The notes beneath the pieces were generated by a model that made no database searches, was not told the DNA's origin, and saw nothing but the letters and a program-made list of their open reading frames with translations. A stretch of 58,155 bases of DNA from contig NC_135762.1 of assembly GCF_052425735.1 (NCBI RefSeq), positions 10,669,846 to 10,728,000 of the forward strand. Direction: 5' to 3'. Made by a program: the position numbers and the translations under genes. Shown here in pieces: positions 21,241 through 50,616 of the stretch. Position 1 is the first letter of the stretch. Each line of letters begins with the position of its first letter. The DNA comes from Oculina patagonica (Eukaryota).

Positions 21241-24200
21241 CATACCAGTTCTGACTTGGAAGAAGGCCTAGCCGGTCAGCGGTTAACTTAAATTTTCGGG
21301 ATGTACTTCATGTATCCCTTATTATAGTGTATTCAGATTATAGTGTATTCAGATGGTTATTCCCCTTTATTTTCATGTATTCCCCTGTATTCTCCTGTAT
21401 TCTCATGTATTCCCCTATATTCTCATGTATTCCCCTGTATTCTCATGTATTCCCCTGCATTCTCATGTATTCCCCTGTTTTCCCCTGTATTCCCCTGTTT
21501 TCTCTTGTATTCCCCTGTATTCTCATGTATTCTCATGTATTCCCCTGTATTCTCCTGTATTCTCGTGTTTTCTCCTGTAATCCCCTGTATTCTCGTGTTT
21601 TCTCCTGTATTCCAATGTATTCCCATGTTTTTTCCTGTATTCTCTTGTATTCTCATGTATTCCCGTGTTTTCTCATGTATTCCCCTGTATTCTCCTGTAT
21701 TCTCCTGTATTCCCCTGTATTCCCATGTTTTCTCCTGTATTCCCCTGTATTCCCGTGTTTTCTCGTGTTTTCTCGTGTATTCTCCTGTATTCCCGTGTAT
21801 TCCCATGTATTCTCCTGTATTCTCCTGTTTTCTCCTGTATTCTCCTGTATTCTCATGTATTCCCCTATATTCTCATGTATTCCCCTGTATTCCCCTGTAT
21901 TCTCATGTATTCTCATGTATTCCCCTGTATTCTCATGTATTCCCCTGTTTTCCCCTGTATTCCCCTGTTTTCTCTTGTATTCCCCTGTATTCTCATGTAT
22001 TCTCATGTATTCCCCTGTATTCTCCTGTATTCCCGTGTTTTCTCCAGTAATCCCCTGTATTCTCGTGTTTTCTCCTGTATTCCAATGTATTCCCATGTTT
22101 TTTCCTGTATTCTCCTGTAGTCTCATGTATTCCCGTGTTTTCTCCTGTATTCCCCTGTAATTCTCCTTTATTCTCCTGTTTTCTCCTGTTTTCCCCTGTA
22201 TTCCCATGTTTTCTCCTGTATTCCCCTGTATTCTCGTGTTTCCTCGTGTTTTCTCATGTATTCTCCTGTATTCCCGTGTATTCCCATGTATTCTCCTGTA
22301 TTCTCCTGTATTCTCCAGTATTCTCATGTATTCCCTTGTATTCTCCTGTATTCCCGTGTTTTCTCCTGTATTCCCCTGTATTCTCGTGTTTTTTCGTGTT
22401 TTCTCCTGTATTCCAATGTATTCCCATGTTTCCTCCTGTATTCTCATGTATTCCCATGTTTTCTCCTGTATTCTCATGTATTCTGTATTCCCATGTTTTC
22501 TCTCGTATTCCCATGTTTTCTCCTGTATTCCCATGTTTTCTCCTGTATTCTCATGTATTCCCCTGTATTCTCCTGCATTCCCGTGTTTTCTCCTGTATTC
22601 CCCTGTATTCTCGTTTTTTTTCGTGTTTTCTCCTGTATTCCAATGTATTCACATGTTTCCTCCTGTATTCTCCTGTTTTCTCCTGTATTCCCCTGTATTC
22701 CCATGTTTTCTCCTGTATTCCCCTGTATTCTCGTGTTTTCTCGTGTTTTCTCCTGTATTCCAATGTATTCCCGTGTTTTCTCCTGTATTCCCCTGTATTC
22801 TTGTGTATTCTCGTGTTTTCTCCTGTATTCTCCTGTATTCTCATGTATTCCTCTGTATTCTCCTGTATTCCCGTGTTTTCTCCTGTATTCCCCTGTATTC
22901 TCGTGTTTTTTCGTGTTTTCTCCTGTATTCCAATGTATTCCCATGTTTCCTCCTGTATTCTCTTGTATTTCCATGTTTTCTCCTGTATTCTCATGTATTC
23001 CCCTGTATTCCCATGTTTTCTCTCGTATTCCCGTGTTTTCTCCTGTATTCCCTTGTATTCTGGTGTTTTCTCCTGTATTCTCCTGAATTCCTCTGTATTC
23101 TCCTGTATTCCCCTGTATTCTCATGTATTCCCCTGTATTCTCCTGTATTCTCCTGCATTCTCCTGTTTTCTCCTGTATTCCCCTGTATTCCCATGTTTTC
23201 TCCGGTATTCCCCTGTTTTCGCCTGTGTTCTACTGTATTTACCTGTATTCCCATTTTTTCACCTGTATTGTACTGCATTCCCCTGTACTCACCTGTATTC
23301 CTATGTTTTCGCCTGTATTCTCCTGTATTCTCCTGTATTTCCCTGTATTCCCATGTATTCCCATGTTTTCTCCTGTATTGCAATGTATTCTCATGTTTTC
23401 TCCTGTATTCTTTTGTATTCTTTTGTATTCTCTTGTATTCTCCTGTATTCCGCTGTATTCTTCTGTATTCTCCTGTATTCCCCTCTATTCCCATGGTTTC
23501 TCCTGTATTCCCCTGTATTCCCCAGTATTCCCATGTTTTCTCCTGTATTCCCCTGTTTTCAAATGTATTCTCTTGTTTTCTCCTGTTTTTCCCTGTATTC
23601 CCATGTTTTCTCCTGTATTCTCATGTATTCTCCTGTGTTCCCCTGTATTCTCCTATATTCTCCTATAAAACGAAGGACTCTGGGGACACAGCATTTTTAG
23701 TCCTAGATTCTATCACTTTCGGTCTTCATGTATGCAGTCATGACGCTTCACACAATAAAAAAATCTAATTAATTCAAAAATCCTATGTCCTTAGAGCCTT
23801 CGTTCCCTTGCAATTGTGCCAAGCCGGCTAAGAGAAACGAAAGGGCTATGGGGACGGTAGTCCAGTCCCTGAACTCTCTCTTCTGCGCGCCCTTTCCATG
23901 GGAAGTTGAAGACATCAAAAGCTCTAGAAATGCACTTACTGTTAACATCTGATAAAACATCGTTCAAGTAGAGAACCCTGTTTATGACATAGTTAAGTCA
24001 ATTTTCATATGTGAAGGTTACAATCTTTCATTTTTTTGAGTCCCAGCTCCTGCAGGAATTCCTGAACAACAGCCACTACGTACGTGATTTTTAATATTCG
24101 TTATAGCATTCTTACTTTCTTCTGAAAGGCAATAGTCCCATTTTTTAATGAACATATGTAAATTTGAATCTATAGTTTCAGGATCTAATGTTTCCATTTT

Positions 24201-24935
24201 TCTACATGATTCAAGATCGCCATTTGCACGGAATATAAGCCCAAATTCATTAGAGATTTGCTGTGAATGGCAGGAACCTTTTGGTATGGTTTTGACAAAG
24301 CGCTGGCATGCATGGAAAATGTCGAGCTTAACTGGAACGGCGGGAAAAACCCTGCGATACGATGGCCGTATGGCACAACAGTCATCCACCATAATCATGT
24401 TCAACTGTTGACCTCTCTTATCAAGCGAGGTTTTTAAATCCTGTAAAAGGTCCTCTACCTCCTTAAAAGCCGTGCTCCGAGTTAGCCTCCACGCCACAAC
24501 TTGACCATGTTCATTTAGGGCACTAAACAAATTTTCAAATTGATTTATAAAAGCATTGTCTGAGCTCCTTGCCACACCAATATGTTTGCTTACTTTAAAC
24601 GTGTGGTCACAAGTCAATATTGAGCATGGTATAGCTTCCATCTGGTTTTGATATGAGATTTCCATATTGTTAAAGAAAGATAGAAACATGTGCATAAGCT
24701 GGTCATTGCTAGGGAACGAATACAATTCCTTTTCATAAACTGATGTTTTTGAATCTGTACCTTCTTCGCTGTTGTGCACAAATGTCTTAAAGTTAATCGA
24801 TGCAATGTCCTCTGCAAGTTCCAAAAAGCTTTGTCCTCGTCCTATATGGGTTACAACATAGTCGATTAAATCTCGAGAAAACGCAGACAGATAAAATAGC
24901 TTGATAGGAAACTTCTTCTTTATTGCCGTTGGGAT
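21241..24935 (-). mobile_element. 5'-truncated Zisupton-like (KDZ superfamily) DNA transposon: transposase core plus terminal 10-bp array
   Basis: ORF segment ~24935-24018 has ILTCDHTFKVSKHIG, LNEHGQVVAWRLT, IMVDDCC, VKLDIFHACQRF and GTQKNERL, the motif order of Zisupton-type transposases as I recall them. The left boundary at 21241 (CATACCAG...CTTGG) is inferred only from resemblance to the terminus at 27569. Confidence 0.62.
21357..23666. repeat. 10-bp minisatellite array, consensus TGTATTC(T/C)CC, ~230 units
   Basis: Continuous 10-bp periodicity (tcccctgtat/tctcatgtat/tctcctgttt variants) with a few phase slips and a more degenerate right end. Confidence 0.97.
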
Positions 24936-25544
24936 GCTTTCGAAAACCAGTTGTGTGCTTTGAGTGTCGTAACTCTTAATGATCTGAAATCCCGCCGAGG
25001 AACAGTATTGCTCTACCTTGGCCCTCTCTTCCCATTGAACCATTTCACAAAGAAGCTCTGCAGTCTCTGGATTTAGCTCTTTGAAAGCGTTTAATGCAAA
25101 AGGATGAGGATGATCCCCGTACTGCGCGGCTATTTTCCCTCCACTTTTAAGACTTTCAAACATATTCTTGAAGACTTCTTCTTTGTCAGGGATCCAGTGC
25201 ATGACATGATTGCTAAAAATAATGTCGTACGACTCCAAGCCAATCCCTGGAAAGTTTGAAGCGCTTCCTTCCACAAATGAGAGATTCTTGATTTCACCGT
25301 GAGACTGCTGAGCCAGTAGAATTCGTTCCCTGTCAGGATCAACCCCCACAACCTTTCCCTCGGGTCCTACAAGCTCAGCGAGATATGCAGACAGCTCTCC
25401 TGTACCGCAGCCTAAATCCAAGATGGTGGCTCCGGGTTGAGGACAAACATCCGTTTGAATGAATATTATGCCTTCCATTTTTTGCACGGAGAGCGAAGTT
25501 TGTTTGTATCCCTCTGCTGGGCTATTGCTGGGCGAATTTGCCAT
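24018..25544 (-). CDS. Chimeric ORF (508 aa): class I SAM-dependent methyltransferase domain (~205 aa) fused in frame to a Zisupton-like transposase core
   Basis: The N-terminal part aligns with the intact methyltransferase at 41935-42747 up to ...TQLVF (motifs [28 protein letters not shown]), then switches at ~24935 to transposase-like sequence without a stop. Expression unknown. Confidence 0.7.
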   Translation of the reverse strand: MANSPSNSPAEGYKQTSLSVQKMEGIIFIQTDVCPQPGATILDLGCGTGELSAYLAELVGPEGKVVGVDPDRERILLAQQSHGEIKNLSFVEGSASNFPGIGLESYDIIFSNHVMHWIPDKEEVFKNMFESLKSGGKIAAQYGDHPHPFALNAFKELNPETAELLCEMVQWEERAKVEQYCSSAGFQIIKSYDTQSTQLVFESIPTAIKKKFPIKLFYLSAFSRDLIDYVVTHIGRGQSFLELAEDIASINFKTFVHNSEEGTDSKTSVYEKELYSFPSNDQLMHMFLSFFNNMEISYQNQMEAIPCSILTCDHTFKVSKHIGVARSSDNAFINQFENLFSALNEHGQVVAWRLTRSTAFKEVEDLLQDLKTSLDKRGQQLNMIMVDDCCAIRPSYRRVFPAVPVKLDIFHACQRFVKTIPKGSCHSQQISNEFGLIFRANGDLESCRKMETLDPETIDSNLHMFIKKWDYCLSEESKNAITNIKNHVRSGCCSGIPAGAGTQKNERL

Positions 25545-25737
25545 CTTTTCTTGCTCCAAACCAAAGCAAATATCTACAAACAACAAAGAGGTTTCATCGT
25601 TAGAATTCCTTTTACTTGATCAATCACTTTCTACGACGAATCAAAAACGTGAGCGAGTACTCTAATAATGATAGTAGCAACTTTATTCTTTCACACCAAA
25701 AATTATATCATATATTGTTTTGTATAACTAAATTAGT

Positions 25738-25900
25738 ATAGGTAATCGCATGATTTCGAGTGCAATTTGGGATAAATCAGCACGAGTAAATTTTTCAAAG
25801 GCTAACCAAATTGCACAAGCCCGTAGGGCGAGTGCAATTTGTAGTCTTTGAAAAATTTACGAGTGCTGATTTATCCCAAATTGTACGAGAAAAATCATGT
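25738..25900. mobile_element. Palindromic (hairpin) MITE-like insertion
   Basis: Long imperfect palindrome centred on GCCCGTAGGGC; absent from the homologous upstream region at ~48215-48240. Confidence 0.7.
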
Positions 25901-27718
25901 TTGTATGTATATTATTAGAAGGGAAACAATATAGTAAATGCTGAATTAAAACGAATGGTGGATACGAACCCAGGGGAGTAGCTATGTAGCCTATAGACCC
26001 GTAGGCCCGGGCCTACAACTGTTTTTCAGACTACTCGTATTTTTAAAATGTACCATCGAAAAATGCAAGCTGATGCACTTTCAAGATGAAATAGAAAGCA
26101 ATTTTTAAAACGTCTTAGCGTTGTAAATCTAACAACTCCCCTTTTTTGATGAGATCAAGGCTCATATAGCAAGTGCAAACTGTTAAGCTTCTGACTATGC
26201 AGGGGTTAGCCAGGTGACAGGCAAATGCACAACGGCGGTGAAGAAAGGTGCGTTTATTTACGAACGAGCAAAAATTGGCGCAATGCCTTCAAATGAAATG
26301 TTAGAATTTAGGAGCCGTTGAGCCACACACACAATCACCAAAAAGTCGAAAGTAAAAAAATATTTCCTAGGGTGTTAATCTCAAAACCTTCCCTGGTGGA
26401 CCTCCCCCCCCCCAAACCCCTCAAAAAGTGGTTGGCCAGGAAGCTGGCAACCCTCCTGGTACCAGAAGGTAACAGTTTGTTCGTTACTGTATCCAGGCAA
26501 CGCTTAGAAAACGAAGGAATAAATTTTTAAATTTTTAATACAATCAAGCATGTAAACTTTGGGGAAAGGTTGTTAAATGTATAGCCATAAGAGGCTGGAC
26601 GTTCAATGCTGATTTTAATGGGAAGTGGTTTTGTCAGCAACAAACCAAGCCAGAGTCGTACTTTTCTTAAAGAAGAGATATCCACGATGCAATCAGCATC
26701 ATATGTCAGTAGAACAGCTAATTGTCGATGGAAATATAAAGGCCGGTAACTTTGACAATGAAAGACAACTCCAGCTTCAAAGAAAGGCTGTTGCTAACAA
26801 CATCCTCATTTATTACTACTTTTCAAGCAGCAGACCTTCTTGTTGATGCAAGTAAAAAGCTGCAGAAAAAAGTCAGCAGCCTTGAAGTTTTGCAACGTTT
26901 CCAGCAGCTTTCACGCATATCAATGACACAACAATGTCATGATTCGATCATGATCAGAATGTCGGGATCAGAAGTTTTGTGCCGGTTTTTTTTTTAACTA
27001 AACCAAGAATGTTAAGTCTTGTCAAATGTGATCTCAGTCTCGAAGCCGGCACAAAGCAAGTACGCTAACATAAACGCGCTTCTAAAGATAAAACTCCACT
27101 AAAGATGCACGTCGATCGCTTATGCAGGGTATCTTTTGTAACCTAAACGCACGCTGGTAATGTGAAATTGGGAGCAAAACTGAATACATACTAGCTGGGC
27201 AAGACGAACGACGAGTGGCCGCACCAGACTGTTCTTTCTTATCGTTATCGGGCTGCGTTTATTTCACTACAAACGCATACTGAAGAGATTTGTTTTCCTT
27301 TCACGACTAACAGACAGGCCGGAAACAAATCAGGCAAAAGAAGCCAGTGAACTAAATTCCGATAATGAATCGAATCAACTTTCAACTTTCTACGTACAAA
27401 ACGTTCTGCTTAGTTCAGACTAATTTTAAACCCGCCCTCACTTACCTTATGGAAATTTTAACCAGATATTATCCCAGACTGTAAACTTGACCAACACTCG
27501 TTTATCGGTCTGCGCAGTTCTAATTAATTATTCCATGGCATCCTGTTTTGATCTTCAGTGAAAAAGAGTATACCATGCACGATTTAGGATGCACATTTTA
27601 AGGGTCTTTTTCTGTAACAGTGTTACGTGTTACACGAGACTACACGCATGCGCTTGTATAATGTATGTTGTTTAAATTTGCGCACGCATGTTTTACATGA
27701 AAATCTAATGTAACAAGG

Positions 27719-29531
27719 AGTTACAAGGTGTTACAGGGAGTTACAAGGTCTTACAGGGAGTTACAAGGTCTTACAAGGTCTTACAGGGTGTTACAGGGTG
27801 TTACGGGGTGTTACAAGTTGTTACAGGGTGTTACAGGGTGTTAAAAGGTGTTACAAGGTGTTACAGGGTGTTACAAGGTGTTACAGGGTGTTACAGGGTG
27901 TTACAAGGTGTTACAGGGTGTTACAGGGTGTTTCAGGGTGTTACAGGGTGTTACAAGGTGTTACAGGGTGTTACAAGGTGTTACAAGGGGTTACAAGGTG
28001 TTACAAGGTGTTACAGGGTGTTACAAGGTGTTACAGGGTGTTACAAGGTGTTACAGGGTGTTACAAGTTGTTACAAGTTGTTACAAGGTGTTACAAGGTG
28101 TTACACGGTGTTACAAGGTGTTACAGGGTGTTACAAGGTGTTACAAGGTGTTACAAGGTGTTACAAGGTGTTACAAGGTGTTACAGGGTGTTACAAGGTG
28201 TTACAAGGTGTTACAGGGTGTTACAGGGTGTTACAAGGTGTTACAAGGTGTTACAAGGTGTTACAGGGTGTTACAAGGTGTTACAGGGTGCTACAGGGTG
28301 TTACAGGGTGTTACAAGTTGTTACAAGGTGTTACAAGGTGTTACAGGGTGTTACAAGGTGTTACAAGGTGTTACAGGGTGTTACAAGGTGTTACAGGGTG
28401 TTACAAGGTGTTACAAGGTGTTACAGGGTGTTACAGGGTGTTACAGGGTGTTACAAGGTGTTACAAGGTGTTACAGGGTGTTACAAGGTGTTACAGGGTG
28501 TTACAAGGTGTTACAAGTTGTTACAAGGTGTTACAAGGTGTTACAGGGTGTTACAAGGTGTTACAAGGTGTTACAGGGTGTTACAAGGTGTTACAAGGTG
28601 TTACAGGGTGTTACAAGGTGTTACAAGGTGTTACAGGGTGTTACAAGGTGTTACAGGGTGTTACAGGGTGTTACAGGGTGTTACAGGGTGTTACAAGTTG
28701 TTACAAGGTGTTACAAGGTGTTACAGGGTGTTACAAGGTGTTACAAGGTGTTACAAGGTGTTACAGGGTGTTACAAGGTGTTACAGGGTGTTACAAGGTG
28801 TTAGAAGGTGTTACAGGGTGTTACAGGGTGTTACAGGGTGTTACAGGGTGTTACAAGGTGTTACAAGGTGTTACAGGGTGTTACAAGGTGTTACAGGGTG
28901 TTACAAGGTGTTACAAGTTGTTACAAGGTGTTACAAGGTGTTACAGGGTGTTACAAGGTGTTACAGGGTGTTACAAGGTGTTACAAGGTGTTACAGGGTG
29001 TTACAAGGTGTTACAAGGTGTTACAAGGTGTTACAGGGTGTTACAAGGTGTTACAGGGTGTTACAAGGTGTTACAAGTTGTTACAAGTTGTTACAAGGTG
29101 TTACAAGGTGTTACAGGGTGTTACAAGGTGTTACAAAGTGTTACAGGGTGTTACAAGGTGTTACAGGGTGTTACAAGGTGTTACAAGGTGTTACAAGGTG
29201 TTACAAGGTGTTACAGGGTGTTACAAGGTGTTACAAGGTGTTACAGGGTGTTACAAGGTGTTACAAGGTGTTACAGGGTGTTACAGGGTGTTACAAGGTG
29301 TTACAAGGTGTTACAGGGTGTTACAAGGTGTTACAGGGTGTTACAAGTTGTTACAAGTTGTTACAAGGTGTTACAGGGTGTTACAAGGTGTTACAGGGTG
29401 TTACAAGGTGTTACAGGGTGTTACAAGGTGTTACAAGGTGTTACAAGGTGTTACAAGGTGTTACAGGGTGTTACAAGGTGTTACAGGGTGTTACAAGGTG
29501 TTACAAGGTGTTACAGGGTGTTACAAGGTGT
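27719..29531. repeat. 10-bp minisatellite array TGTTACA(A/G)GG, ~180 units, inside the transposon
   Basis: Near-perfect tandem ttacaaggtg/ttacagggtg with rare ttacaagttg variants and no phase slips. Confidence 0.98.
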
Positions 29532-29989
29532 ATTATTCCTCCTTTTACTGTATGCTGTGTTGAAACAATTATAAAGAAATTATTTTGTTGTTGTTACAAG
29601 TTTTAATTTTGCTGAAAAGTATGGTGTATTTTTTCCTCTTTTTTTGCTCTTCTTTTTTTGCTCTTTTATACTTTTAATTTACAAGACCCCACGAGCTTGT
29701 CAGCTTTTATCTACATCGTGTTTAATAAAGACAACGTACTTACTTTTTTACTGTATGTTGTGTTCAAGCAATTAGAAAGGAAATATTTTTTTACTTTGTT
29801 TTACAAATTGTTATCCCATTCATATTTATGACATTTTTTGTCCCATTCCCAGCGACCAGTGGCGTAAGTCCCAAAACTAAATGTTTTATTCCTGTGTGGT
29901 CTTACGACAACTCTTGATTGGGTCTCTGGGTAATGTCAATGTCAAAATCCTTTTAGCAAAATATTCCTAAACAAAACTTAACTTATAAA

Positions 29990-30545
29990 CTTTGTTTATC
30001 AATTTACTTGTGCGGGATGTAACTCCCGTTATATTGGCGAGACTTCCCGTCATTTTTCAACAAGGATCAAAGAGCATACTTTAACTGATAAAAATTCACA
30101 TGTTTTTAAACACCTTAACAGTTCATCTAATTGCAAAAATTTATACACACTTGATTGTTTTAAAATTTTGGATTCTGCTAAAACCGTTTATTTTCTTAAA
30201 TTAAAAGAGGCTTTTTACATTAAAAGTTTAAAACCAGATTTAAACACTCAAGTGCAGCATGTTAACACCTTTTTATTATAATCTTTTGTTCTATTAGTAA
30301 CGGTCTAAAGCTCACACTGTGAGTAATTACTGTTCTAGACAGTACCAGACAGTACCTGCCACTTTGTAACGACTTTACCGTTATCTTTTGTTGTTGTAAT
30401 TTTACGTTGTATACAATTCTATTTTTGTAATTTTAGCTTGGGTATATACATAGCCCTAGATTTTTAAATTCTCAATAAACTGAAGATGGCATGAGTGACA
30501 TGCCGAAACATGTCTTTAAAAGGTTGTTTCATGTTTTTAAAATTA
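29990..30545 (+). mobile_element. 5'-truncated Penelope-like retroelement (GIY-YIG endonuclease end plus 3' region) nested in the KDZ element
   Basis: 29994-30281 translates VYQFTCAGCNSRYIGETSRHFSTRIKEH...SHVFKHL...FKILDSA...LKLKEAFYIKSLKPDLNTQ...*, a Penelope-type GIY-YIG domain with its Cys/His pattern. It is followed by a hammerhead motif. Confidence 0.85.
30475..30519 (+). ncRNA. Minimal type I hammerhead ribozyme (Penelope-associated)
   Basis: ATAAA-CTGAAGA-T-GGCATG-AGTGA-CATGCC-GAA-ACATGT-C-TTTAA: CUGANGA and GAAA core, 6-bp stem II, palindromic ACAUGU stem III, GUC cleavage triplet. Confidence 0.78.
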
Positions 30546-30609
30546 GTAAGGATAAAGCAAAGACAAACATCCGCCGTCAAAAAGCATCTCTTATCTGATT
30601 GCATTGTTC

Positions 30610-31038
30610 CCCGGGGGGGGGGGGTACTCCCATATGTGGCCTATATAGGTATGTGCCGCCCGATAGGGTATGGTTTTTGAGGTTCTCGGTCCTTAAATAG
30701 GGTATCATTTTTGCTCCTTTTGGCAATGTGTTCCCGGTGTGATCCTTAGATAGGGTACCTAAATTCTATTAGCTAAAATAAACGCCCAGCTAAACGAAAA
30801 ATTTTCTGTTCAGGTATTAGAAAAGCGATTTTATAAAGATTTGTCTTGCTGTGCGCGGTTAGCCGTTATTTGGGTCGTCACGGAACGCTTCTCCTCCCCT
30901 TAAATAGGGTGCCATTTTTCGGTTTTGGGCCTTAAAAAGGGTATCAATTTTCGCTTCCTTTATCCTTAAATAGGGTCAGGGTTTAAGAACCTTGGCGGCA
31001 CACCCCTATCCAAAATTTATGCGAGTACCCCCCCCGGG
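30610..31038. mobile_element. MITE with CCCGGG(G)nTACTC TIRs nested in the KDZ element
   Basis: CCCGGGGGGGGGGGGTACTC ... GAGTACCCCCCCCGGG; internal CCTTAAATAGGGT repeats; ATTGTTC present on both flanks. Confidence 0.75.
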
Positions 31039-31563
31039 AATTGTTCACTCGTTCTTACGAGTACACCAGACACGTATCAACGTCTTCTTTTGTTGCTTCA
31101 CCAATAAAAAAAGGTCCAGATTCTTAATTGGTTGCAGGCGGATAGACAAGTAATCGTATCAAAAAAACCAGACCCGATAGAAGATTAGATAAGGCGTTCC
31201 ACGTGTAATCTACATGCGTATATGTGTACTATTTTGCTTATTGACCAATCAGAGAAAATGTCCAGATTCTTTGTTGGTTTAAGCTGGTGATTATGTCAGG
31301 CGCCCAACTTCTGCCGCGAAAAAAAGGAGGACTGATTGGAGATTAGATAATAATATATAAGGGACTCTGTAAAGTGCAGAAACGGACGGCGGATCGCGGA
31401 CGGCGGACGGCAAAAAAAAAAAAAATAAATAAATAAAAATAAAAAATTTAAAAAATAAAAAATAAATAAAAATATCAAAATTATTTTTTCTCAAAGGGTT
31501 CGGGCAAGATTCTCCTATCTCTATCCACAGGCCACGGTAAAACGTGAAAACTGCATGACTTTT

Positions 31564-34500
31564 TTAATATGAATTATGTTGTTTAGCACCACGGACTTTA
31601 GGGAGCACTGGCTTCCTTCCTTTCTTATAACACAGTTCAGTGTAACGGTTTCTTCGCACACACATTCGGTGGAGATAAAAGAGATGATGACACTTATCCA
31701 TGGCACAAAGTATCTTCTTGAAACGACCCAACCATACAAATACTTGTTCAGCAGCCATGGTGTTTAAGTCAGGGTGTTTCTCTTTGAGTTCTTTAAGCTT
31801 TTCACCATAATTTGTCTTACAGGATTCCCTTTTATGATTTTTTATGTGAAGGCTGTCTATGATTTTAGTCACCTTAGACCACAGATCATCATAGGGACTA
31901 GGAAGAGGAAGTTTTCCACGGGATGCCTTAAGCTGGTCCAGATTACACATGTTGTCATAAGAGAGTACGACTTCTTCCCATTGCTCAGGGGGCACATCTT
32001 TAAGAGTGTTGTACAAAAACCTAAGTGTTATTAGAAACACTTGGGAAGGTGATTCTGACCTAAAAGATAATATTTAAAATGTTTAAAAATTAAGTAACTC
32101 AGAATTTCAGTGTTACATTGACACATCTTTCTAAGTTTGTATTTTTCTTGACATTTCAACTGATTGTCAAAACAAAACCAAAATTACAGTAAGGGTAAAA
32201 CATATAATAGACATTTAAGTAATGTTTGCACTCAGTCTACATGCTAATAAAGTTGAAGTTTTGTTATGTTATGTTGTGTATTTGATATGTTTGTCGTGCA
32301 TGCAATTAAGGAAAACATTATTGCACTCTTGAGTTGAAAATAGAATAAGTATCAAAAACGTTTTGCGTTAGCAGTTTGGTAATAATAATATCTTACTTAA
32401 ACAATGGCTGCCAAGTTGCAATATGACCTCCTCCACTAACAATAAAGCAGTGACCCTTAGACCACTTTCTCAGGGACTTCTTTCCTCCTGTGTCTTTGTT
32501 GCAGGGATCTTCAAGTGGCAAAGTTTCTAAACTAGGAAGCAGTTCTTTGTTGAATCCTGTAAACTCTTCAAGTCCTTTAGAAATACAGACAACTTATGTT
32601 AAAATAAAACAAAAATATATAACATAGTGTTTGAGCCATTAATTAAAAATGCTTAACAATTAAAACTGTGCAAATTCATTCTATGACATAACCATAAATT
32701 AAAGTAAGAATTTGTGATGTCAAATTATCTAATACTTAACGTTAAAGATTGCTGGAATTGTAATGAGCTTAACAGGAAAAGAATTAAATATAGCTTCAAC
32801 AAAATATTCAAGTAATATTGTTTTAAGTGATTTTATGTACTCAACAGCTAGTGGGACACATGGCAACAGCTATCATGAGGGTTTGTGCACATTGAGATTT
32901 CATATCAATTTACTCATATTGCAATTACCTTGGGCACTAACTGAAGATAAACCTAAATCACTTCCTTGCAATTTGTTCACAGTCTCATCAACAAAGTGAA
33001 CCTGGTCGCTATTCTCACCGCTGTCATCAGGGTCATGTACAATTGGTGCATTGGTTCCTCCTTTTTTAAAAAAAAAACAAAAAAAAAAAAAACAAAACAA
33101 AAACAGAACAATAAATTGTAAAAGTTATGTTTTGGAATTTCATTTGGTGTTTTTGGTCTATAGAATACCTTAAAATTCTGTTTATAAGCCCCCTGTTAAA
33201 AGGCCCTCCAATAGAGGAAGACGGTACTGAACAGGGCTAACTTTTGATTGGATTACATGTTTTAAACTTTGAAACATCAATAATTATGGCTGATCAACAC
33301 TACAATGGCTTGCTTCGAAACACTTTTTGCATTCCACTTATATGCACCAACCCAGGTTATGACCCAAATTTTACTCTTCATCACTAGAGAAATTCTTTAT
33401 TTATACAAATGGCTGCATGAGATATTACCACTGTCAATAAATACTTGGAGTATTACAGAACATGCAAGGCATTATTATAATGAGCTTTCACATGATAAAT
33501 TGGTGTGAAGTCAGAAACCACATACATACTGGCTGAAAATAGCTTGTTAAATCAAACTGAACCACATGGATATTTTCCTACCTTGCTTTGAGCAGTATTC
33601 AAGAAATTCTTTCAGGTCAGTGGGGATTCCCTGCTCAGACAGATTACTACAGTGGGTCTTGCAGAAGGCCTTCCCTCTTTCAGGTGTGGCTTCACATATG
33701 TCTGGATAATTGACCATAGGCAAGCTTGGGATTGCATTTTTAACCTTGTACATGCAGTGGGGGAATCTCAACTTCCAGTTACCATCAATCACCCAAAGTT
33801 TTCCACAACCTGCAGATACATATTTAATAATTATTACTCATCACAATTAATTAATTATTAAGTACTAAAAACAATTCATTTCTCAATATTAGTTATCCTC
33901 AACCAATTACGGCGCGTGAAAGAACGGCCCTGTTAAAAAGCCAATCAGAGGTTAAAATGCGGGGGGGCCGGAACAAGCTTTTTTGCCGCAATTTGCAGAC
34001 GGACTATACCGGGGTTTTGTTCGTCTGCAACGCAGGCTAAACATTAGTCACAATTGTACATTTTTCACTTTTTCATCACTTGAAAATAAAAAAGTTTATT
34101 TCAATAAATTATATTACCTCTCTTTTTACAGTCCTCTGTACAATTATGTATGTAAGTTGAAACCCTCCTCCTCTCTTCAATGCCATCCATCAGTTGTTCT
34201 CTGTCAGCATCCTTGTACATGGGAAAATCTTTTAATGGAGAGCCACTCTCTCTTAATGAATTCTCTAACTCACCCCACCAGAACATGTCGGCCACACACT
34301 TTGCAGACAGTTCTCTTTGTGAACAGCCTGAATGAAAAAAATTTGCATTGTGTTACATACTTATTACTTGAGGTAAAAAAATCAAGAAAACTTGAAAATT
34401 AACATTGCTGATCAGAGGGGAATCTAATACTCAATTACTTTTAGTTTTTTTCTGGTAAATGCTGTGATAATTTCTCATAAACCATGACTCAGTTTAACAT

Positions 34501-36457
34501 GTACAGACAAATACATGAAAATGAAATTCTTTCTTTGAGGGTGGTGGACAAAACACTGGAGATCAAGTATTACAGCAATACATTAATTTCTCACTTGGAA
34601 TATTATTTTAGGGTACCTTAATTTTGAAAATTAACAACACTTGTTATTAACATGAAATTTTAAAAGTTTTCATTAGTTTTATTTTATTACTCATAAATTT
34701 TGTTCAAATTAAAATGGTTTTTATATCCCTTTAATAAGATAGTCTATTATAGAGGTAAAATCCATTGAAGGCAGTTTATTTATCTTTAGATGCTCAGAGG
34801 TGAATAGTACTTTGCTATATATAATCACCTCTGAGTTAACCAATCAGCGCACACATAAAGCACTATTCACTTGTGTGGTATATACTAAATTATAATAATT
34901 ATTGATAAAATTCAGGATTCCTAACTTGAATTTGAAAAAAAAAATGAATAAGAAAGTAATAAAATCACAAACTAGTAAAAGAAAAATAACCTAAGAAAAA
35001 AAAGAGAAATAAACCGAGATAGGTAGATGAATAACTAGATCAATCTGATCGTTTAATCAAAACCAAATCTAGCAGCTTAATTAAAGTTCAATTATTTGAA
35101 TGTGTTCATAAGTGAAGCAATTACTTAATTATAAATATTCACTTGCCTTCTTTTCTCCTCATCCACTCACTATATCCCTCAGCAAAAGCTTCAAATGAGA
35201 GCCATCCGTGATTTCTATTTTAAATGGTTAGTAAACATTATACAAAATTGTTATTGATATATCTTAGTTGGAACCATTTAACAAACAGACATCGAAACTG
35301 GTTTATTGGGCCTCCCCACCACGACAAGGTGGACTCTTATAGGGGAGGGAAGAAACAGCAAATAAGAAGAGATACATTCAATTTCCTATCAGTGACAGCT
35401 GCAGTGATGGCCGAGTTTCTTACAAACGTACTAACTTAGCGTAAAAATAACTCACACAACTAGATGTTTTTAAAAACAAGAGTCCCTTGGCAATAAACCA
35501 GTTTATGAAATATATATATATTAGATAATTCTAATTCAGAAAATATTAAAAGAAATAATCTTACTTACGCAAGAGAACAGTACAATTCAAAAAGTTCACG
35601 ATCTACAAGTGTGGAGTCAGTTGCCTCGACTGTATCTCTGATCGTGTCGTAAAACTGGTATCCACTCTCCTTGTTTCCAAAGCGAGAGTAAGAGAAATTC
35701 AAACGGCATTTATTGCACCGCAAAGTAATTTTTTTGCCTGCAAAAGAATAATATTAAAACATTGGCTGCAATCCTTGTGAAAAAGAAATAATTAAAATTC
35801 TACTGGTTTTTTGAAACAGTGTTAAACGACGAAGCATATGGCACTTTTACGACACAATTATATGAAAGTTGTGAGGATCTAGGCAGAATAATGATAACTT
35901 ATAGCGGTATTGTACATAAATGAAAAATGTACAAAATAAAAATTATAAAAAAGTATAGATCACAATAAAATTTTTATTAAGCTATATGGTTTGAAAACAG
36001 CCATACTACCAAAAGGGACCCCAACAATCAATATTAAAATTAAGCTTACTACACTTTAAAACAAAAAGTATTATTACATTACCTGCAAAGGAACCTTTGA
36101 ATCCAAAGAACACAACGTCGCTAGGATCATTGTGGCGCGATAAATTTCCGCCACACTGAAGACATCGGCTTGTTGGAGGCCCAAAGCAACGCTGATCCTT
36201 TCCGGATGATTGGGAAAGATGATCTGCCAACAAAATAGCGTTTGGCAGATCTTCGACATCCTTCAGAGCAGGGAACAGTTCCTCTATTATCTCCAACCGA
36301 TTCGTGGAGAATAAAAGAAGAACCGTTGACACCGCTTGCCTGAGGATGTCGAACTTATGAAGGCCGAACTTGGAGATTAGAAATACAGAAATCTGATCTT
36401 CAGAAAGGCAAGGTGTTAAAGATCGCTTAGTCTGTGACGAGCTCTCTTGCCAGCCAT
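31564..36457 (-). pseudogene. 8-exon CxC5/CxC6-like + KDZ (Kyakuja-type) transposase, ~618 aa, with one apparent frameshift near the start
   Basis: Phase-consistent exons 36457-36083, 35737-35569, 35214-35147 (GC donor), 34327-34118, 33809-33582, 33060-32929, 32574-32397, 32059-31564. Motifs: RCLQC...LRCNKC...YSRF, LSFEAFAEGY, HNCTEDC..GC..WVIDGNWK...C...FCKTH, CNKDTG, SESPSQV, LSYDNMCNL, IIDSLHIKNH, LNTMAAEQVFVWL. caagATGGCT at 36457 meets TAA after 13 codons; adding 1 nt restores the frame. Confidence 0.8.
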
Positions 36458-36679
36458 CTTGATATTGTGCAAACTTGATCCAGTCCTCTACTGACCGTGT
36501 AACACTGGTAACAGTTGTAACAGTGTTACATAAAAGTGATACCAGATCTCTGACCCTAAATCGGGCAGCATGTGAAAAAGAGCACTGAACCAGTTCACTC
36601 AGTTGAATTTGCATTATGTTTTTTTATAACGTGCGAATAAATAAAAAATAAGCCAGGTTCTCGAGTATGATGCTCAGTC

Positions 36680-41934: not shown

Positions 41935-42747
41935 ATGGCAAATTCGTCCAGCAATAACACAGCAGAGGGATACAAACACAACTCGCCTTTGATGCAAAAG
42001 GCGGACGGAGAAATATTCATTCAAACGGATGTTTGTCCTCAAGCAGGAGACGCCATCTTGGATTTAGGTTGCGGTACAGGAGAGCTGTCTGCATATCTGG
42101 CTGAGCTTGTAGGACCCGAGGGAAAAGTTGTGGGTGTTGATCCTGACAAGGAACGAATTCTACTGGCTCAGCAGTCTCACGGTGAAATCAAGAATCTCTC
42201 ATTCGTGGAAGGGAGCGCTTCAAACTTCCCAGGGATTGGCTCGGAGTCATACGACTTTATTTTCAGTAATTACGTCATTCACTGGATCCCTGACAAAGAA
42301 GAAGTCTTCAAGAATATGTTTGAAAGTCTTAAAAGTGGAGGGAAAGTATGCATTCAATATGGTGATCATATGTTTCCTTTTTTAGCAAGTGCTTTCGAGG
42401 AACTCAACCCCGAGACTTCAAATGAATGTTTTGCGATGTATCATTTTGAGGAGAGGGCCAAGATTGAACAATACTGTTCCACCGCGGGATTTCAGATCAT
42501 TAAGAGTTCCAACACGCTAAGCACACAACTGGTCTTCCCAACCACCGAGAGCCTTCTGCACTGGATTTGGTCGACAACACATGGTGTCTTTAAGCCCAAG
42601 CTGGTAACCGAGGAGCGTTTGCAGAGATATTACTCGTACTCAAGCAGAAGCGGTAAGCCACCTTTCGACTTCAGAGGAAACAAAGAAGAATCTCCAGTTT
42701 GTCAACTGATAACTGTTAAGCAAGCAAGAGACAAATCCACCCCATAA
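41935..42747 (+). CDS. Class I SAM-dependent methyltransferase (small-molecule type), intact, 270 aa
   Basis: Single coding exon with motif [10 protein letters not shown], post-I VVGVDPD, motif II YDFIFSNYVIHW, motif III LKSGG. A polypyrimidine tract plus TAG acceptor at 41905 precedes aagATGG at 41935. Substrate unknown. Confidence 0.88.
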   Translation: MANSSSNNTAEGYKHNSPLMQKADGEIFIQTDVCPQAGDAILDLGCGTGELSAYLAELVGPEGKVVGVDPDKERILLAQQSHGEIKNLSFVEGSASNFPGIGSESYDFIFSNYVIHWIPDKEEVFKNMFESLKSGGKVCIQYGDHMFPFLASAFEELNPETSNECFAMYHFEERAKIEQYCSTAGFQIIKSSNTLSTQLVFPTTESLLHWIWSTTHGVFKPKLVTEERLQRYYSYSSRSGKPPFDFRGNKEESPVCQLITVKQARDKSTP

Positions 42748-44546: not shown

Positions 44547-44892
44547 TATATTAATACCTCATATTTTCAGGGTTGAGCACGTGAACGCGCGCGAAAATCG
44601 ATGGCACGGGGAGGCATCTCCTTTTGCGCACGCGTGCTCAAACCCGTTCAGAATCAAGTTGTACTTTTCTCTTTGTATTCGTGATCAGAGAAAGATAGAG
44701 TTGTTTTGTTGATTGATAGCCATCAAACAATGATATTTAGCATTCTTCAGCATGAAGGGTTTCGTGATATCTGTGAATTAATTACCTCTGCACTACCTAC
44801 TGAGTCAATTTGCATTCAAACTCATTGGCGTGGTCACATTTGTTCGTTATATTGGGATAGATTTAAGGTTTTCTTGTTCGCGGCAAGCGTTC

Positions 44893-45071
44893 GTGGCAAG
44901 CGTGGCAGACCCAAGAATACATGGCGACATACAGTAGAGAGTGACTTGAGGGGCTTAAACCAAAGCTGGAACACCATCCAACAACTGGTCATAGGCAGAC
45001 AGCAGTGGAAGAACTTTGTTGCTGCCCTACGTGCCAGAGGGCACAATGGAAAGTGAGTGAGTGAGTGAGTG
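44893..45071 (+). mobile_element. 3' end of an RTE-clade non-LTR retrotransposon; mirrored at ~48631-48810 (-)
   Basis: Translates GKRGRPKNTWRHTVESDLRGLNQSWNTIQQLVIGRQQWKNFVAAL, typical of an RTE ORF C-terminus, followed immediately by a (GAGT)n microsatellite tail. Confidence 0.8.
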
Positions 45072-45109
45072 TTCGTCATAACAAGAATTTTATTATACCA
45101 AGTTTCTGT

Positions 45110-45298
45110 GCTTGTCAGGATCAACACCCACAACCGTTCCCTTGGGTCCTACAAGCTCAGCCAGATATGCAGACAGCTCTCCCGTACCGCAGCCTAAATC
45201 CAAGATGGTGGTACCGGGTTAAGGACAAACATTCGTTTGAATGAATATTATGCCTTCCATTTTTTGCACGGAGAGCGAAGCTTGTTTGTATACTTCTG
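45110..45298 (-). pseudogene. Methyltransferase pseudogene fragment (5' and 3' truncated, in-frame TAA)
   Basis: Matches the N-terminal part of the family from ...YKQASLSVQK to DPDK, with VCP* in place of VCPQ. Confidence 0.85.
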
Positions 45299-46867: not shown

Positions 46868-48375
46868 CAAGACTGAGCATCATACTCGAGAACCTAGCTT
46901 ATTTTTAATATATTCGCACGTTAACATAATGCAAATTCAACTGAATGAGCTGGTTCAGTGCTCTTTTTCACTGAAGATCAAAACAGGGTGCCATGGAATA
47001 ATTAATTAGAACTGCGAAGACTGATAAAGTAATGTTGGTCAAGTTTACAGTCCGGAATAATATATGGTCATTTGAGAAGACTCATCATTCTTGGTTTAGT
47101 TGAAAATAAACCGGCTCAAAACTTTTGATCCCGACATTCTGATCATGACATTGTTGTGTCATTGATATGCGTAAAAAGCTGCTGGAAACGTTGCAAAACC
47201 TCAGGGTTGCTGACTTTTTTTCTGCAGCTTTTTACATGCATCAACAAGAAAGTCTACAGCTTGAAATATAGTAACAAATGAGGATACTGTTAGCGACGGC
47301 CTTTCCTTGAAGCTTGAGTTGACTTTCGTTGTCAAAGTTACCGGCCTTTATTTTTCTAATGACTATAAGCTGCGTGTTTCTGACATACACCTGATTGAAG
47401 AGACTTTGACACATAAAAAGCATAAACCATAAGCTATGCGACCTAAATGTTTACTGGGAAATCGGAAAAAGTAATCGTCGTCTGTGGCAGAATGAACATT
47501 ATAATAAGCTTAACAGGTTGCATAAATTATGCTCTTAAAGCTCTCAAGGAAAGAAAATATCTTTAGTATAAATAAATGGGATATTACTAAGCTTACCAAA
47601 GCTGTCTACCCATAACCCCTTTTTATCGTTCATGGTTTATGCTTTTCACAGGGTCAACGTTTCTTCAATTTGGTGTATATGGCTGATCACTTTTTGAGGG
47701 GTTTGGGGGGGGGGAGAGAGAGAGGGGGGGGGGAGTGAGGTCCACCAGGAAAGGTTATGAGATCAAGACCCTGGGAAATATAAAAAAAAATTGGTGATTG
47801 TATGTGTGGTTCAACGGCTTCCTAAATTTTAACATTTCATTTGAAGGAATTGCGCCAATTTTTTCTCGTTCGTAAATAAACGCGCCTTTCGTAAAGAGCA
47901 CATGCCGTTGTGCATTTGCCTGTCACCTGGCTAACCCCTGCATGGCCAGAAGGCTCCACAGTTTGCACTTGCTAGATAAGCCTTGATCTCATGAGGAAGG
48001 GGACTTGTGAGATTTATAATGCTAAGATGTGTTAAAAATTGCTTTCTATTTCATCTTGAAAGTGCATCAGCTTGAATTTTTCTATTGATTTTCAAAACAC
48101 GAGTACCTGAAAAAATTTGTAGGCCCGGGCCTTCGGGTCTATAGACTACCTACGTCCCTGGGTGCGTATCCACCATTCGTTATAATTAAGCATTTTATAT
48201 ACTGTTTCCCTTTATATGATATATTTTTTGGTGTGAAAAAATAAAGTTATTAGAGTACTCGCTCTCGTTTTTGATTCGTTTAGTCGGGGAGAGTGACTGA
48301 TCAAGTAAAACGGATCCTAACGATTAAACCTCTTCGTTGTTTGTAGATATTTGTTTTGGTTCGGACCAAGAAAAG

Positions 48376-48609
48376 ATGATAAATTTGACAAGCAATAGCC
48401 CAACAGAAGGTTACAAACAAACCTCGCTCTCCATGCAAAAAATTGAAGGCATAATATTCATTCAAACGAATGTTTGTCCTGAACCCGGTGCCACCATCTT
48501 GGATTTAGGCTGCGGTACGGGAGAGCTGTCTGCATATCTGGCTGTGCTTGTAGGACCCGAGGGAAAGGTTGTGGGTGTTGATCCTGACAAGCACAGAAAC
48601 TTGGTATAA
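48376..48609 (+). pseudogene. 3'-truncated methyltransferase copy
   Basis: [13 protein letters not shown]...ILDLGCGTG...GVDPDK, then unrelated HRNLV*. Same breakpoint as the 45110 copy. Upstream 47690-48375 is a diverged inverted homolog of ~25545-26430. Confidence 0.85.
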
Positions 48610-49933
48610 TAAAATTCTTGTTATGACGAACACTCACTCACTCACTCACTTCCCATTGTGCCCTCTGGCACGTAGGGCAACAACAAAGTTCTTCCACTGC
48701 TGTCTGCCTATGACCAGTTGTTGGATGGTGTTCCAGCTTTGGTTTAAGCCCCTCAAGTCACTCTCTACTGTATGTCGCCATGTATTCTTGGGTCTGCCAC
48801 GCTTGCCACGAACGCTTGCCGCGAACAAGAAAACCTTAAATCTATCCCAATATAACGAACAAATGTGACCACGCCAATGAGTTTGAATGCAAATTGACTC
48901 AGTAGGTAGTGCAGAGGTAATTAATTCACAGATATCACGAAACCCTTCATGCTGAAGAATGCTAAATATCATTGTTTGATGGCTATCAATCAACAAAACA
49001 ACTCTATCTTTCTCTGATCACGAATACAAAGAGAAAAGTACAACTTGATTCTGAACGGGTTTGAGCACGCGTGCGCAAAAGGAGATGCCTCCCCGTGCCA
49101 TCGATTTTCGCGCGCGTTCACGTGCTCAACCCTGAAAATATGAGGTATTAATATACCGTATTTATTCGATTAAGCGCCCTGAGTGCTTATTAAATTTTTG
49201 GACTTTGAGAGTGGGCGCTTTTTCGAGGTGGGCGCTTATTCGAGGCTGCGCGCTTATTAAATTTTCACTATTTCTTGCAAGTAGTAAGTTAATTTTACAA
49301 GAAAACAATGAATAATAATAAAAGATGAAGATGTACCAAAGCAGAATTTTAACTGTTCATAGACAAATTCGGCTAACGTGTTTACATCGTTGTTGCCACC
49401 CAATTCAGACCATGTAATGATTCCTTTGGAAGGTTACAATTGTGCAATTTGTCACACGTAACTGAGCGCATGGGAGTATGAACGAACAGAACAATTATAA
49501 CCTCCCAAAGGAATCATCACATGATCTGAATTAGGTGGCAACAACGATGTAAACACGTTAGCCGAATTGGTCTATTGAAAGTTCTGTAAAATACTAAGAG
49601 AGCTCGGTCTTCGGGGAAGTCTCTTAGTAGTACTTAGTCAATTTCAACCTCAATTTCAATAATAATCAAAGTATTCCTCTTATGCATTTTAGTATTTTTT
49701 GAAGGGGGTGGGCGCTTATTCGATGCTGGGCGCTTTTAACTTTTCCTACCTACATGGTGGGCGCTTATGCGAGGTGAGCGCTTATTCGAGGCTGGGCGCT
49801 TACTACCTGTTCCTACCTACATTGTGGGCGCTTATTCGAGGTTGGGCGGTTAATCGAATAAATACGGTACTCAAACAGAGGATAGCGTTTCTGGCGCGCG
49901 CTGATTGGCTACTCAAACTCCGAATATCCTTTG

Positions 49934-50240
49934 TTATTATTCAACACATGCGCGCGCTGCCCATATATGGTCAAAATGTGAACGTTATCTGTCATCCGTA
50001 CATAACAGATATCCTGCGATATATGTAGGTTGCGAAGATTCGTGCGAAATCTTGTAAAGCGCTGCATAATTACAGTTTTTCTATCTGCAAAATGTGTTTC
50101 GTTGACCATTTGTTGAATAATAAAACAATTATCCTGCTCAATCTTGCGGAATATCGTCTGATTTTAGCCAACTCGGCCTACGGCCTCGTCGGCTAAGTAT
50201 CAGGCGATATTCCGCGCGATTTCGCAGGATAATTGTTAAT
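49934..50240. mobile_element. Arm-specific insertion composed of two palindromic MITE-like units
   Basis: TTATTATTCAACA...TGTTGAATAATAA and AACAATTATCCTGC...GCAGGATAATTGTT; missing at the homologous site ~43765. Confidence 0.75.
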
Positions 50241-50584
50241 TATAACCCACCCATTTACTTTTGCGCGCGCTCATTGGACAAAACGCATCACGTGGTACAA
50301 AATCGGACGACGGGTATCAGCGAATATACCCCGTCCGATTTGATATCCGTCGTCCGATTTTGTAGGCAAGCACAAAACAAACGAATGAAGTCACCTTATT
50401 CAATTTTAACTTTTAATAAAATCACAGAGTTAAAAAATCACGTAAACCAATCAACTTAGCCACAGTTACGCCGGTTTTATTACATAGGTTTTTCCTATAA
50501 ATTTACTGGCGATAAAGCGCGTTGTAGAAATAAGTCGAAGGGGTAAAAAATTAATAAAACCCCTTTCTGCCTTGCTGGTATATT

Positions 50585-50616
<32 letters not shown>

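Follow-up and report, generated by a model that had tools for sequence, protein, structure and literature searches.

A methyltransferase-transposase reading frame in the coral Oculina patagonica, probably left open by a young accident at the DNA level

Introduction

A long open reading frame that runs from a host methyltransferase gene into a transposase raises the question of whether a new gene is being born or whether two unrelated frames were joined by accident. We address this question for a locus of the coral Oculina patagonica, contained in a window of 58,155 nucleotides (assembly GCF_052425735.1, contig NC_135762.1, positions 10,669,846 to 10,728,000 of the forward strand); all coordinates below count from the first letter of this window. 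Host-transposase fusions such as SETMAR arise when splicing reaches into a transposon that lies downstream or within an intron; most of them keep the DNA-binding domain of the transposase, and they are shared between species and have dN/dS values below 1 (10.1101/2020.05.07.082677). An initial annotation of the present locus, made from the letters alone, had offered two readings: a nascent gene of the SETMAR type or a chance in-frame join. The prior for a join being in frame by chance is about one in three.

Results

Anatomy of the chimeric reading frame

The list of open reading frames places the chimera on the minus strand at 24021-25544, with an ATG at 25544 and a TAA at 24018-24020. Its 508 codons contain no stop, as had been annotated; counted from an upstream TTG instead of the ATG, the frame comprises 522 codons. 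Codons 1-202 belong to a class I SAM methyltransferase paralog and codons 205-508 to the RNase H-like core of a DDE transposase. The frame is contained in a GenBank gene model (KAL9972318.1, ACROYT_G018602), which is entered as a "hypothetical protein" and has a tail of translated satellite.

The methyltransferase-derived half (24939-25544, minus strand) was delineated by Pfam, paralog alignment and a structure model. It matches Methyltransf_31 over residues 37-174 (E = 3.4e-24) and retains the SAM-binding motifs, in agreement with the initial annotation: motif I (GxGxG) is ILDLGCGTG, encoded at 25398-25424, and the acidic motif II is VVGVDPD. The window contains two intact 270-residue paralogs, one on the plus strand at 41935-42747 and its mirror copy on the minus strand at 51261-52073, to both of which residues 1-201 of the chimera are 79% identical. 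Relative to these paralogs, 67-69 residues are missing from the C-terminus, which bears out the loss suspected earlier. In an AF2 model of the intact paralog (pLDDT 90), the corresponding region consists of two helices (204-214 and 226-236) and a last strand (254-262). This is the only strand past β6, and we take it, from the known class I topology, to be β7, which lies between β5 and β6. The methyltransferase part of the chimera stops at residue 203, so that β1-β6 are kept and both helices and the last strand are absent; the model thus suggests that the seven-stranded class I sheet is incomplete, with β7 gone. The lost region also includes two invariant residues, G217 and F219, and four nearly invariant ones, L223, T225, L258 and K262.

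The transposase-derived half (24021-24932, minus strand) begins near residue 170 of a roughly 800-residue transposase and ends two residues past the catalytic glutamate. A search with residues 202-508 returned 1167 transposase family proteins at E<=1e-3; full-length relatives have about 800-1000 residues, and the match to the chimera covers approximately residues 140-460. The four motifs that had been proposed as catalytic, CDHTFK (24594-24611), VDDCC (24375-24389), KLDIFH (24312-24329) and NERL (24021-24032), indeed contain the D, D, D/H and E that are nearly invariant in an alignment of the family. Structure prediction of the core gave a confident RNase H fold (AF2 pLDDT 90), with the catalytic residues D313, D387 and E506 all present. 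The best PDB match of the predicted core is the ISCth4 transposase (6xgx; Foldseek E = 2.6e-7, TM 0.54 over 278 columns). The N-terminal region of the family with its W/P/C/H motif (zinc/DNA-binding, part of DUF6729) is absent from the chimera, as are the nearly invariant histidine and the conserved helix that follow NExLH downstream of E506. We also considered whether the element belongs to the KDZ (Kyakuja-Dileera-Zisupton) transposons. The Pfam KDZ model PF18758 found no match at E<=1 in the chimera or in 19 full-length relatives, its matches in the genome sit at other loci, and the fold is Mutator/IS256-like; these observations give no support to a KDZ identity.

The methyltransferase part lacks two helices and the last β-strand of its core, and the transposase part lacks its DNA-binding N-terminus and the Glu-carrying helix. 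The predicted 508-residue product is therefore most likely non-functional in both activities.

The junction

A three-way alignment places the junction at 24933-24938 (minus strand), where the two parents share six base pairs, AGCATC, within a 14-bp patch that is identical between them at 12 of 14 positions. The methyltransferase and the transposase both read AGCATC in the same phase, as Ser-Ile, and this is why the join is in frame. The junction sequence occurs once in the genome. It falls inside both parental reading frames and is flanked by neither a TIR nor a TSD, confirming that the fusion took place at the DNA level and away from a transposon end. A simple insertion should have left the rest of the methyltransferase 3' end on the far side of the transposon, but the window contains none, and no homology was seen between the left flank and the sequence that follows the sister methyltransferase gene. 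Gene capture in the style of Pack-MULEs was rejected: homology on the methyltransferase side extends over more than 20 kb of chromosomal context, and no other transposon copy carries the methyltransferase.

The transposon partner

The transposon side has a sister copy on contig 4, to which it is 98.7% identical over 956 nt. This sister copy runs upstream into the transposase N-terminus, is disabled by stops, and shares with the chimera the stop after NE[R/I]L. The loss of the transposase C-terminus, which had been read from the stop directly after NERL, is therefore real but older than the fusion. The stop was also considered as an effect of the fusion or as an intron donor; its presence in the sister copy and the downstream remnants, which reveal an internal deletion of about 115 codons, speak against both. 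These remnants (23665-24020, minus strand) form the degenerate 3' part of the transposon copy. They share the internal deletion and the loss of the OTU domain with the contig-4 copy, carry an additional 49-bp deletion at 23999, and include a high-copy repeat at about 23814-23947. An array of a 10-mer satellite (21358-23664) also belongs to the 3' part of the transposon. As it stands, the element is not autonomous: its 5' part is replaced by the methyltransferase gene, and it has the internal deletion and no OTU domain.

The 5' exon and the inverted duplication

The chimera uses the 5' exon, the acceptor and the ATG of the methyltransferase gene itself, the last two as stated in the initial annotation; all three, and the intron, are intact. 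Assembled contigs that skip 25574-27445 confirm the acceptor, which precedes the ATG by 29 nt. This GT..AG intron of 1872 nt (minus strand) separates a 5' UTR exon, with a minimum extent of 27446-27557 (minus strand) and the donor AAG/GTAAGT, from the coding exon; within it lies a 177-bp MITE (25737-25913) that the sister arm lacks. The joint 25573->27446 was seen in contigs of two RNA-like runs, X14 and X16, only. One spliced contig has variants of the sister paralog, and the other matches the window only over the 224 nt that adjoin the acceptor. Neither contig need thus come from the fused copy; the sister paralog is transcribed and spliced. A later transposon insertion of 9 kb (27569-36571, TSD CTCTTTTTCAC) lies upstream, 11 nt away from the most 5' base for which transcription was seen, and cuts exon 1 off from its former upstream DNA.

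The methyltransferase side forms the end of a large inverted duplication. The left arm (24933-46367) ends exactly at the junction, and the right arm (46868-58155) continues to about 59628, beyond the window. Between the arms, which have 96-97% identity, is a gap of 500 N. The sister methyltransferase paralog (L022) is the mirror copy, about 34 kb away and just outside the window, and has a +1 frameshift. It is 97% identical to the methyltransferase side over 807 nt, and the homology of the arms extends for more than 20 kb.

An arrangement of this kind could also result if the arms were two divergent haplotypes of one locus, scaffolded head to head, in which case the chimera and the frameshifted L022 gene would be alleles distinguished by a structural variant. 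Divergence between the arms is 3-4%, the 500-N gap lies where they meet, and each of four runs examined showed a single sequence type of the outer paralog, the L022 type in three of them; in the fourth, X14, most of the exon resembles L022, but 25350-25573 resembles the window. We nevertheless regard two haplotypes as unlikely. The left and right flanks, which are single-copy and share no homology over 20 kb, both join the outer ends of the arms, so that one arm alone could not connect the chromosome. Furthermore, derived changes of the L022 type are common to several organism labels, and the split between the L022 and window types must therefore be old.

Selection on the two halves

The transposase half shows nine coding differences from the contig-4 copy, eight of them non-synonymous and one synonymous. 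Five or six changes fall on the chimera branch (R219L, N239S, P453L, which took two nucleotide substitutions, Q463H and possibly E210K); none is synonymous and all are at conserved positions. The comparison gives no sign of the purifying selection expected of a domesticated transposase; as far as the present data allow, this half evolves neutrally.

The methyltransferase half has a different record. Since the duplication it has accumulated no non-synonymous and two synonymous changes, where about eight changes would be expected from the rate in the intron (Poisson P ~0.01); L022 has acquired 12 non-synonymous changes and the frameshift. These counts suggest that the methyltransferase half was under purifying selection until recently; the constraint is a past one, and may also be present today. 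A working methyltransferase paralog was therefore probably destroyed by the fusion. Gene conversion was rejected as the reason for the ancestral appearance of this half, as differences occur throughout the exon and identity to the outgroup paralogs is only 86%.

All 508 codons of the chimera are open, whereas both sister copies, L022 and the one on contig 4, have suffered disabling mutations. With approximately 7-8 substitutions in total on the chimera branch, however, we estimate that the frame would have stayed open by chance in about 70% of cases. The frame is long past the junction because both parents were young reading frames.

Search for the fusion in other data

The initial annotation looked to transcripts and other samples for the junction, and in the data examined it does not appear there: no contig or protein fragment spans it outside this assembly. 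No contig bridges the junction in four public runs of four organism labels, noting that contigs demonstrate presence rather than absence. In these runs the transposon-side contigs end at 24946 and the methyltransferase-side contigs at 24933, and both run on into unlike sequence, which is that of the unfused parents. In the two RNA-like runs with spliced 5' exons, which carry other organism labels, no contig of a fusion transcript crosses 24933-24938. Twenty runs share a fraction of 0.50-0.66 of the 31-mers of the stretch, and we considered these shares as proof of the locus in other samples. They require no chimera, because 72% of the 31-mers are present in the parental copies. Among 5.8e9 proteins, none covers both halves except the cluster of this genome itself. 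Searches for junction-spanning protein fragments, for the exact product elsewhere and for the junction pattern in metagenome contigs were each blank, which is weak evidence of absence.

Because the junction is in none of the public runs examined, and because the region is rich in repeats and 21 kb from the scaffold gap at the centre of the inverted duplication, the assembly might have mis-joined two real loci, one with a transposon copy and the other with an unfused copy of the methyltransferase, and the junction would then be absent from the animal. This we consider highly improbable. Both sides are unique variants (3% from L022 and 1.3% from the contig-4 copy), neither of which is found unfused elsewhere in the assembly, and the left flank is single-copy and contiguous. 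Moreover, assemblers do not join sequences at an overlap of 6 bp, and microhomology in the same phase is what end joining or template switching in cells typically leaves.

Discussion

Our results favour the chance join over the SETMAR-like nascent gene, for which the junction would have been expected elsewhere and the transposase half would not be neutral. Probably, a young accident at the DNA level broke a methyltransferase gene and by chance left a long open frame; the fusion is probably private to the sequenced source. The events may be reconstructed as follows. An inverted duplication would have created two copies of the methyltransferase gene, of which the mirror copy, about 34 kb off, is now frameshifted, and in the copy within the window purifying selection would have persisted through most of the period after the duplication. 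The partner was presumably a nearby copy of the DDE transposon that was already non-autonomous, with the internal deletion, the stop right past the catalytic glutamate and no OTU domain. Repair of a later break via AGCATC would then have fused the methyltransferase exon, at codon 203, with this copy at about its codon 170.

A nascent chimeric gene would instead be driven by the methyltransferase promoter or by the neighbouring transposon and give a stable protein with SAM binding kept or a new role acquired, a polymorphic SETMAR-like proto-gene. The 508-codon frame with its intact 5' exon, acceptor and ATG is what such a gene would need; no non-synonymous change has arisen on the branch of the methyltransferase half, the RNase H core folds confidently in silico, and an annotation pipeline predicted a gene at the locus. 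We still think it quite unlikely, given the loss of the last core strand and of invariant C-terminal residues from the methyltransferase, the loss of the DNA-binding region and of the helix past the glutamate from the transposase, the purely non-synonymous changes in the transposase half, the 9-kb insertion at the 5' exon and the failure of any contig or protein outside this assembly to cross the junction. Known host-transposase fusions, furthermore, are mainly made by splicing, keep the DNA-binding domain and have dN/dS below 1 (10.1101/2020.05.07.082677). Very unlikely, too, is the particular case of a fusion transcribed in O. patagonica that yields a stable 508-residue protein, segregates as a proto-gene within about 1% divergence of its birth, still binds SAM and uses the transposase core as a new C-terminal module. 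If the fusion were expressed and spreading, it would show the birth of a host-transposase fusion, which is rarely seen; the evidence at hand speaks against this.

The locus is best regarded as a caution and a worked example. Its deposited reading frame would be picked up by screens for host-transposase fusions, and it demonstrates that a gene and a young transposon copy, joined in one step by microhomology, can yield a long, clean and domain-rich frame that resembles an innovation of the SETMAR type. The breakpoint is precisely resolved, both parents are still present, and the event can be dated relative to the duplication.

In its 6-bp shared breakpoint, 12/14 patch, lack of a TIR or TSD, position at the edge of an inverted duplication and transposon copy as one partner, the locus resembles microhomology-mediated rearrangements (MMEJ or MMBIR type) that truncate a gene at a transposon, which would be the likely mechanism here; the coral case differs in its in-phase join and unusually long frame. 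The intact coral paralogs align end to end with solved structures of the SAM-dependent small-molecule methyltransferases JHAMT and BioC and fold as a seven-stranded class I enzyme, whereas the chimeric copy ends past β6. The transposase core resembles the Mutator/MULE-IS256 group (ISCth4, PDB 6xgx) in its fold and in the order D...D...(D/C)xxH...E, which is present in the chimera. Pfam hits of the chimera to MULE are weak, the sequence similarity lying under the Pfam threshold, and the full-length coral relatives differ from this group in having an N-terminal DUF6729 and a C-terminal OTU cysteine-protease domain.

With SETMAR, finally, the chimera shares a host methyltransferase-type N-terminus followed in frame by transposase sequence, and the host promoter and start codon. 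SETMAR, however, has a SET domain, and the coral chimera a truncated Rossmann methyltransferase of the small-molecule type. Fusions of the SETMAR type are born by splicing, whereas the coral join is a DNA breakpoint from exon to exon. They keep a DNA-binding domain; the coral chimera has none, its transposase part is decaying neutrally rather than under purifying selection, and its junction is found in this assembly only, whereas SETMAR-type fusions are shared between species.

Results

The methyltransferase-transposase anatomy proposed in the initial annotation holds. On the minus strand of the window, which comes from the chromosome-scale contig C5 of Oculina patagonica, the chimeric ORF (24021-25544) starts at an ATG and stays open for 508 codons. 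A class I SAM-methyltransferase domain (Pfam Methyltransf_31) spans residues 37-174 (E=3.4e-24), and two intact 270-residue paralogs in the window, at 41935-42747 (plus strand) and 51261-52073 (minus strand), share 79% identity with residues 1-201; two broken copies were also matched, at 45096-45296 and 48376-48606. Residues 202-508 match a large eukaryotic transposase family (1167 representatives at E<=1e-3), corresponding to residues ~140-460 of proteins of 800-1000 residues, and carry a weak Pfam MULE signal (residues 343-414). The GenBank model ACROYT_G018602 (P0263 = KAL9972318.1; 799 residues) joins residues 1-462 to a translation of 10-mer satellite DNA and is in this respect an artefact of annotation.

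The coral's own genome contains full-length ORFs of the transposon family (797-852 residues), with an N-terminal DUF6729 and a C-terminal OTU protease domain. The architecture of DUF6729, IS256/Mutator-like DDE core and OTU cysteine protease is seen in L003 and L005-L008 of this genome and in the Nematostella protein P0001, and the family is widespread in cnidarian data. A KDZ identity is not supported: the Pfam KDZ model (PF18758) gave no match to the chimera or to 19 full-length relatives, and its matches in the O. patagonica genome are at other loci. Both the predicted fold and the weak Pfam signals favour the Mutator/IS256 group.

The AlphaFold2 model of an intact paralog (pLDDT 90) contains strands at 40-44, 64-69, 88-92, 106-112, 132-142 and 186-195, followed by helices at 204-214 and 226-236 and a last strand at 254-262. 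The truncation noted initially is real: the methyltransferase part of the chimera ends at residue 203, so that the predicted seventh strand and the region containing the invariant Gly217 and Phe219 would be missing. The solved structures of JHAMT and BioC align with the intact paralog over its whole length, including the C-terminus. The transposase half yields a confident RNase H-like core (pLDDT 90), with the IS256-family transposase ISCth4 as best PDB match (E=2.6e-7) and Asp313, Asp387 and Glu506 in place. The chimera stops two residues past Glu506, without the nearly invariant histidine and conserved helix that follow, and the Cys/His-rich N-terminal 170 residues of the transposase are absent. 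Because of the gaps in the methyltransferase C-terminus, in the transposase N-terminus and after Glu506, we infer that both activities have been lost.

Both parents of the fusion could be located. The methyltransferase side (24933-25736, resuming at 25914-27568 past a 177-bp MITE) is 96-97% identical to an inverted copy, L022, the frameshifted sister paralog just past the right end of the window (C5:10728785-10729464). On the transposon side, 956 nt (23991-24946) match a copy on another contig, C4, at 98.7% identity. That copy reaches further upstream, where it encodes the transposase N-terminus interrupted by stops; it lacks the OTU domain, and shares with the chimera both the stop that follows NE[R/I]L and the absence of the same ~115-codon downstream stretch. 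The stop after NERL does mark a missing transposase C-terminal part, and it is also present in the sister copy. The 10-mer satellite noted above occurs in both orientations around the ~2.3-kb sister fragment and takes up at least 18 kb there (C4:13282000-13301999; L035 and L037).

In a three-way alignment, the chimera tracks the methyltransferase parent as far as ...GAAAGCATC and the transposon parent from AGCATCCCAACGG... on. Six bases, AGCATC (24938-24933), are present in both parents, within a patch identical at 12 of 14 positions, and encode Ser-Ile in identical phase in both genes. The join is therefore a microhomology junction lying inside both ORFs and not a transposon end, the latter in agreement with the original reading, and the common phase of the hexamer explains why it is in frame. 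The junction occurs once in the assembly.

The junction is also the exact end of the left arm (24933-46367) of a large inverted duplication. The right arm (46868-58155, continuing to ~59628 outside the window) extends into the methyltransferase C-terminus. The arms are 96-97% identical, flank a central 500-N gap and carry three methyltransferase copies each. Two later insertions distinguish the left arm: the palindromic, intronic MITE (25737-25913), which is not in the sister arm and is skipped by contigs of two DNA runs, and a 9-kb transposon (27569-36571) flanked by an 11-bp duplication, CTCTTTTTCAC, whose empty site is kept in the other arm (~57169-57179). This transposon lies 11 nt upstream of the 5'-most observed base of the methyltransferase 5' exon. 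Mirror ORFs of 116 residues with the motif GKRGRPKNTWRHTVESDL (44706-45056 and 48646-48996) adjoin the two broken inner methyltransferase copies and are probably the element that interrupted them. Left of the junction are the 3' remnant of the fused transposon, its 10-mer array (21358-23664) and single-copy DNA; within the remnant, 23814-23947 is a very high-copy repeat, whose depth reaches the thousands in each of the four runs. The arms differ by 3-4%, yet a single type of the outer methyltransferase paralog is seen in each of four other samples; a polymorphic duplication could account for this, as could two haplotypes mis-scaffolded as arms.

Contigs of two runs, whose RNA nature is a guess, skip 25574-27445 with GT..AG borders on the minus strand; this joint is absent from contigs of the two DNA runs. 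The spliced contigs define a 5' UTR exon (at least 27446-27557, minus strand) and confirm the proposed methyltransferase splice acceptor, 29 nt before the chimera ATG. They bear variants of the sister paralog or an orthologue and may come from these instead of the fused copy. L022 is spliced and present in the RNA-like run X16 despite its frameshift; X14, under another organism label, has a counterpart without the frameshift. The GenBank model of this frameshifted L022 copy is ACROYT_G018608 (P0262 = KAL9972323.1), with a predicted protein of 192 residues.

With the other paralogs as outgroups, we polarised the 14 substitutions that separate the chimera from L022. The chimera branch has two changes, both synonymous; the L022 branch has 12, 6-7 of them non-synonymous, plus a +1 T frameshift. 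Over 815 nt of intron, the two arms accumulated 11 and 12 derived changes, a rate at which ~8 changes are expected in the 612-nt coding half, compared with two observed (Poisson P ~0.01, our calculation). This deficit shows that the now-fused methyltransferase copy was under constraint during most of its history. Between the transposase half and the C4 copy there are nine differences, eight of them non-synonymous. Outgroups assign R219L, N239S, P453L (two bases), Q463H and perhaps E210K to the chimera branch, at family-conserved positions and with no synonymous change. The pattern fits neutrality; under strong constraint we estimate its probability at less than ~0.01, with non-synonymous changes taken to make up ~75% of random ones. 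The transposon copy's branch (~0.6%) is shorter than the arm's (~1.35%), which places the origin of this copy, and therefore also the fusion, after the arm duplication. Changes since the fusion are too few for a test of post-fusion constraint.

Finally, we compared the junction with contigs of four runs under four organism labels, which show presence but cannot prove absence. In all four, transposon-side contigs stop at 24946 and continue into unlike sequence, and methyltransferase-side contigs stop matching at 24933 and run on, one of them for 558 nt further, compatible with an unfused gene. No contig in the four runs bridges the junction. Across 20 runs that share words with the stretch, the share is at most 0.66, where the parental copies alone contain 72% of its 31-mers. 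In a search of 5.8 billion clustered proteins, both halves are spanned by no cluster other than the one from this genome; a 91-residue junction-centred query found no spanning fragment, and neither the exact product nor the junction string was found elsewhere.

Discussion

The chimera is most likely the product of a recent microhomology-mediated rearrangement that would have joined a methyltransferase copy to a transposon copy and destroyed a working methyltransferase paralog. The rearrangement is probably private. A nascent chimeric gene, one of the two alternatives raised initially, is unlikely: the transposase half looks neutral, both predicted folds are incomplete and the junction is bridged in none of the four runs. 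Host-transposase fusion genes such as SETMAR are mostly born by splicing, retain the transposase DNA-binding domain, are common to several species and have dN/dS <1 on the transposase part (10.1101/2020.05.07.082677). In contrast to these fusions, the chimera displays none of their testable features.
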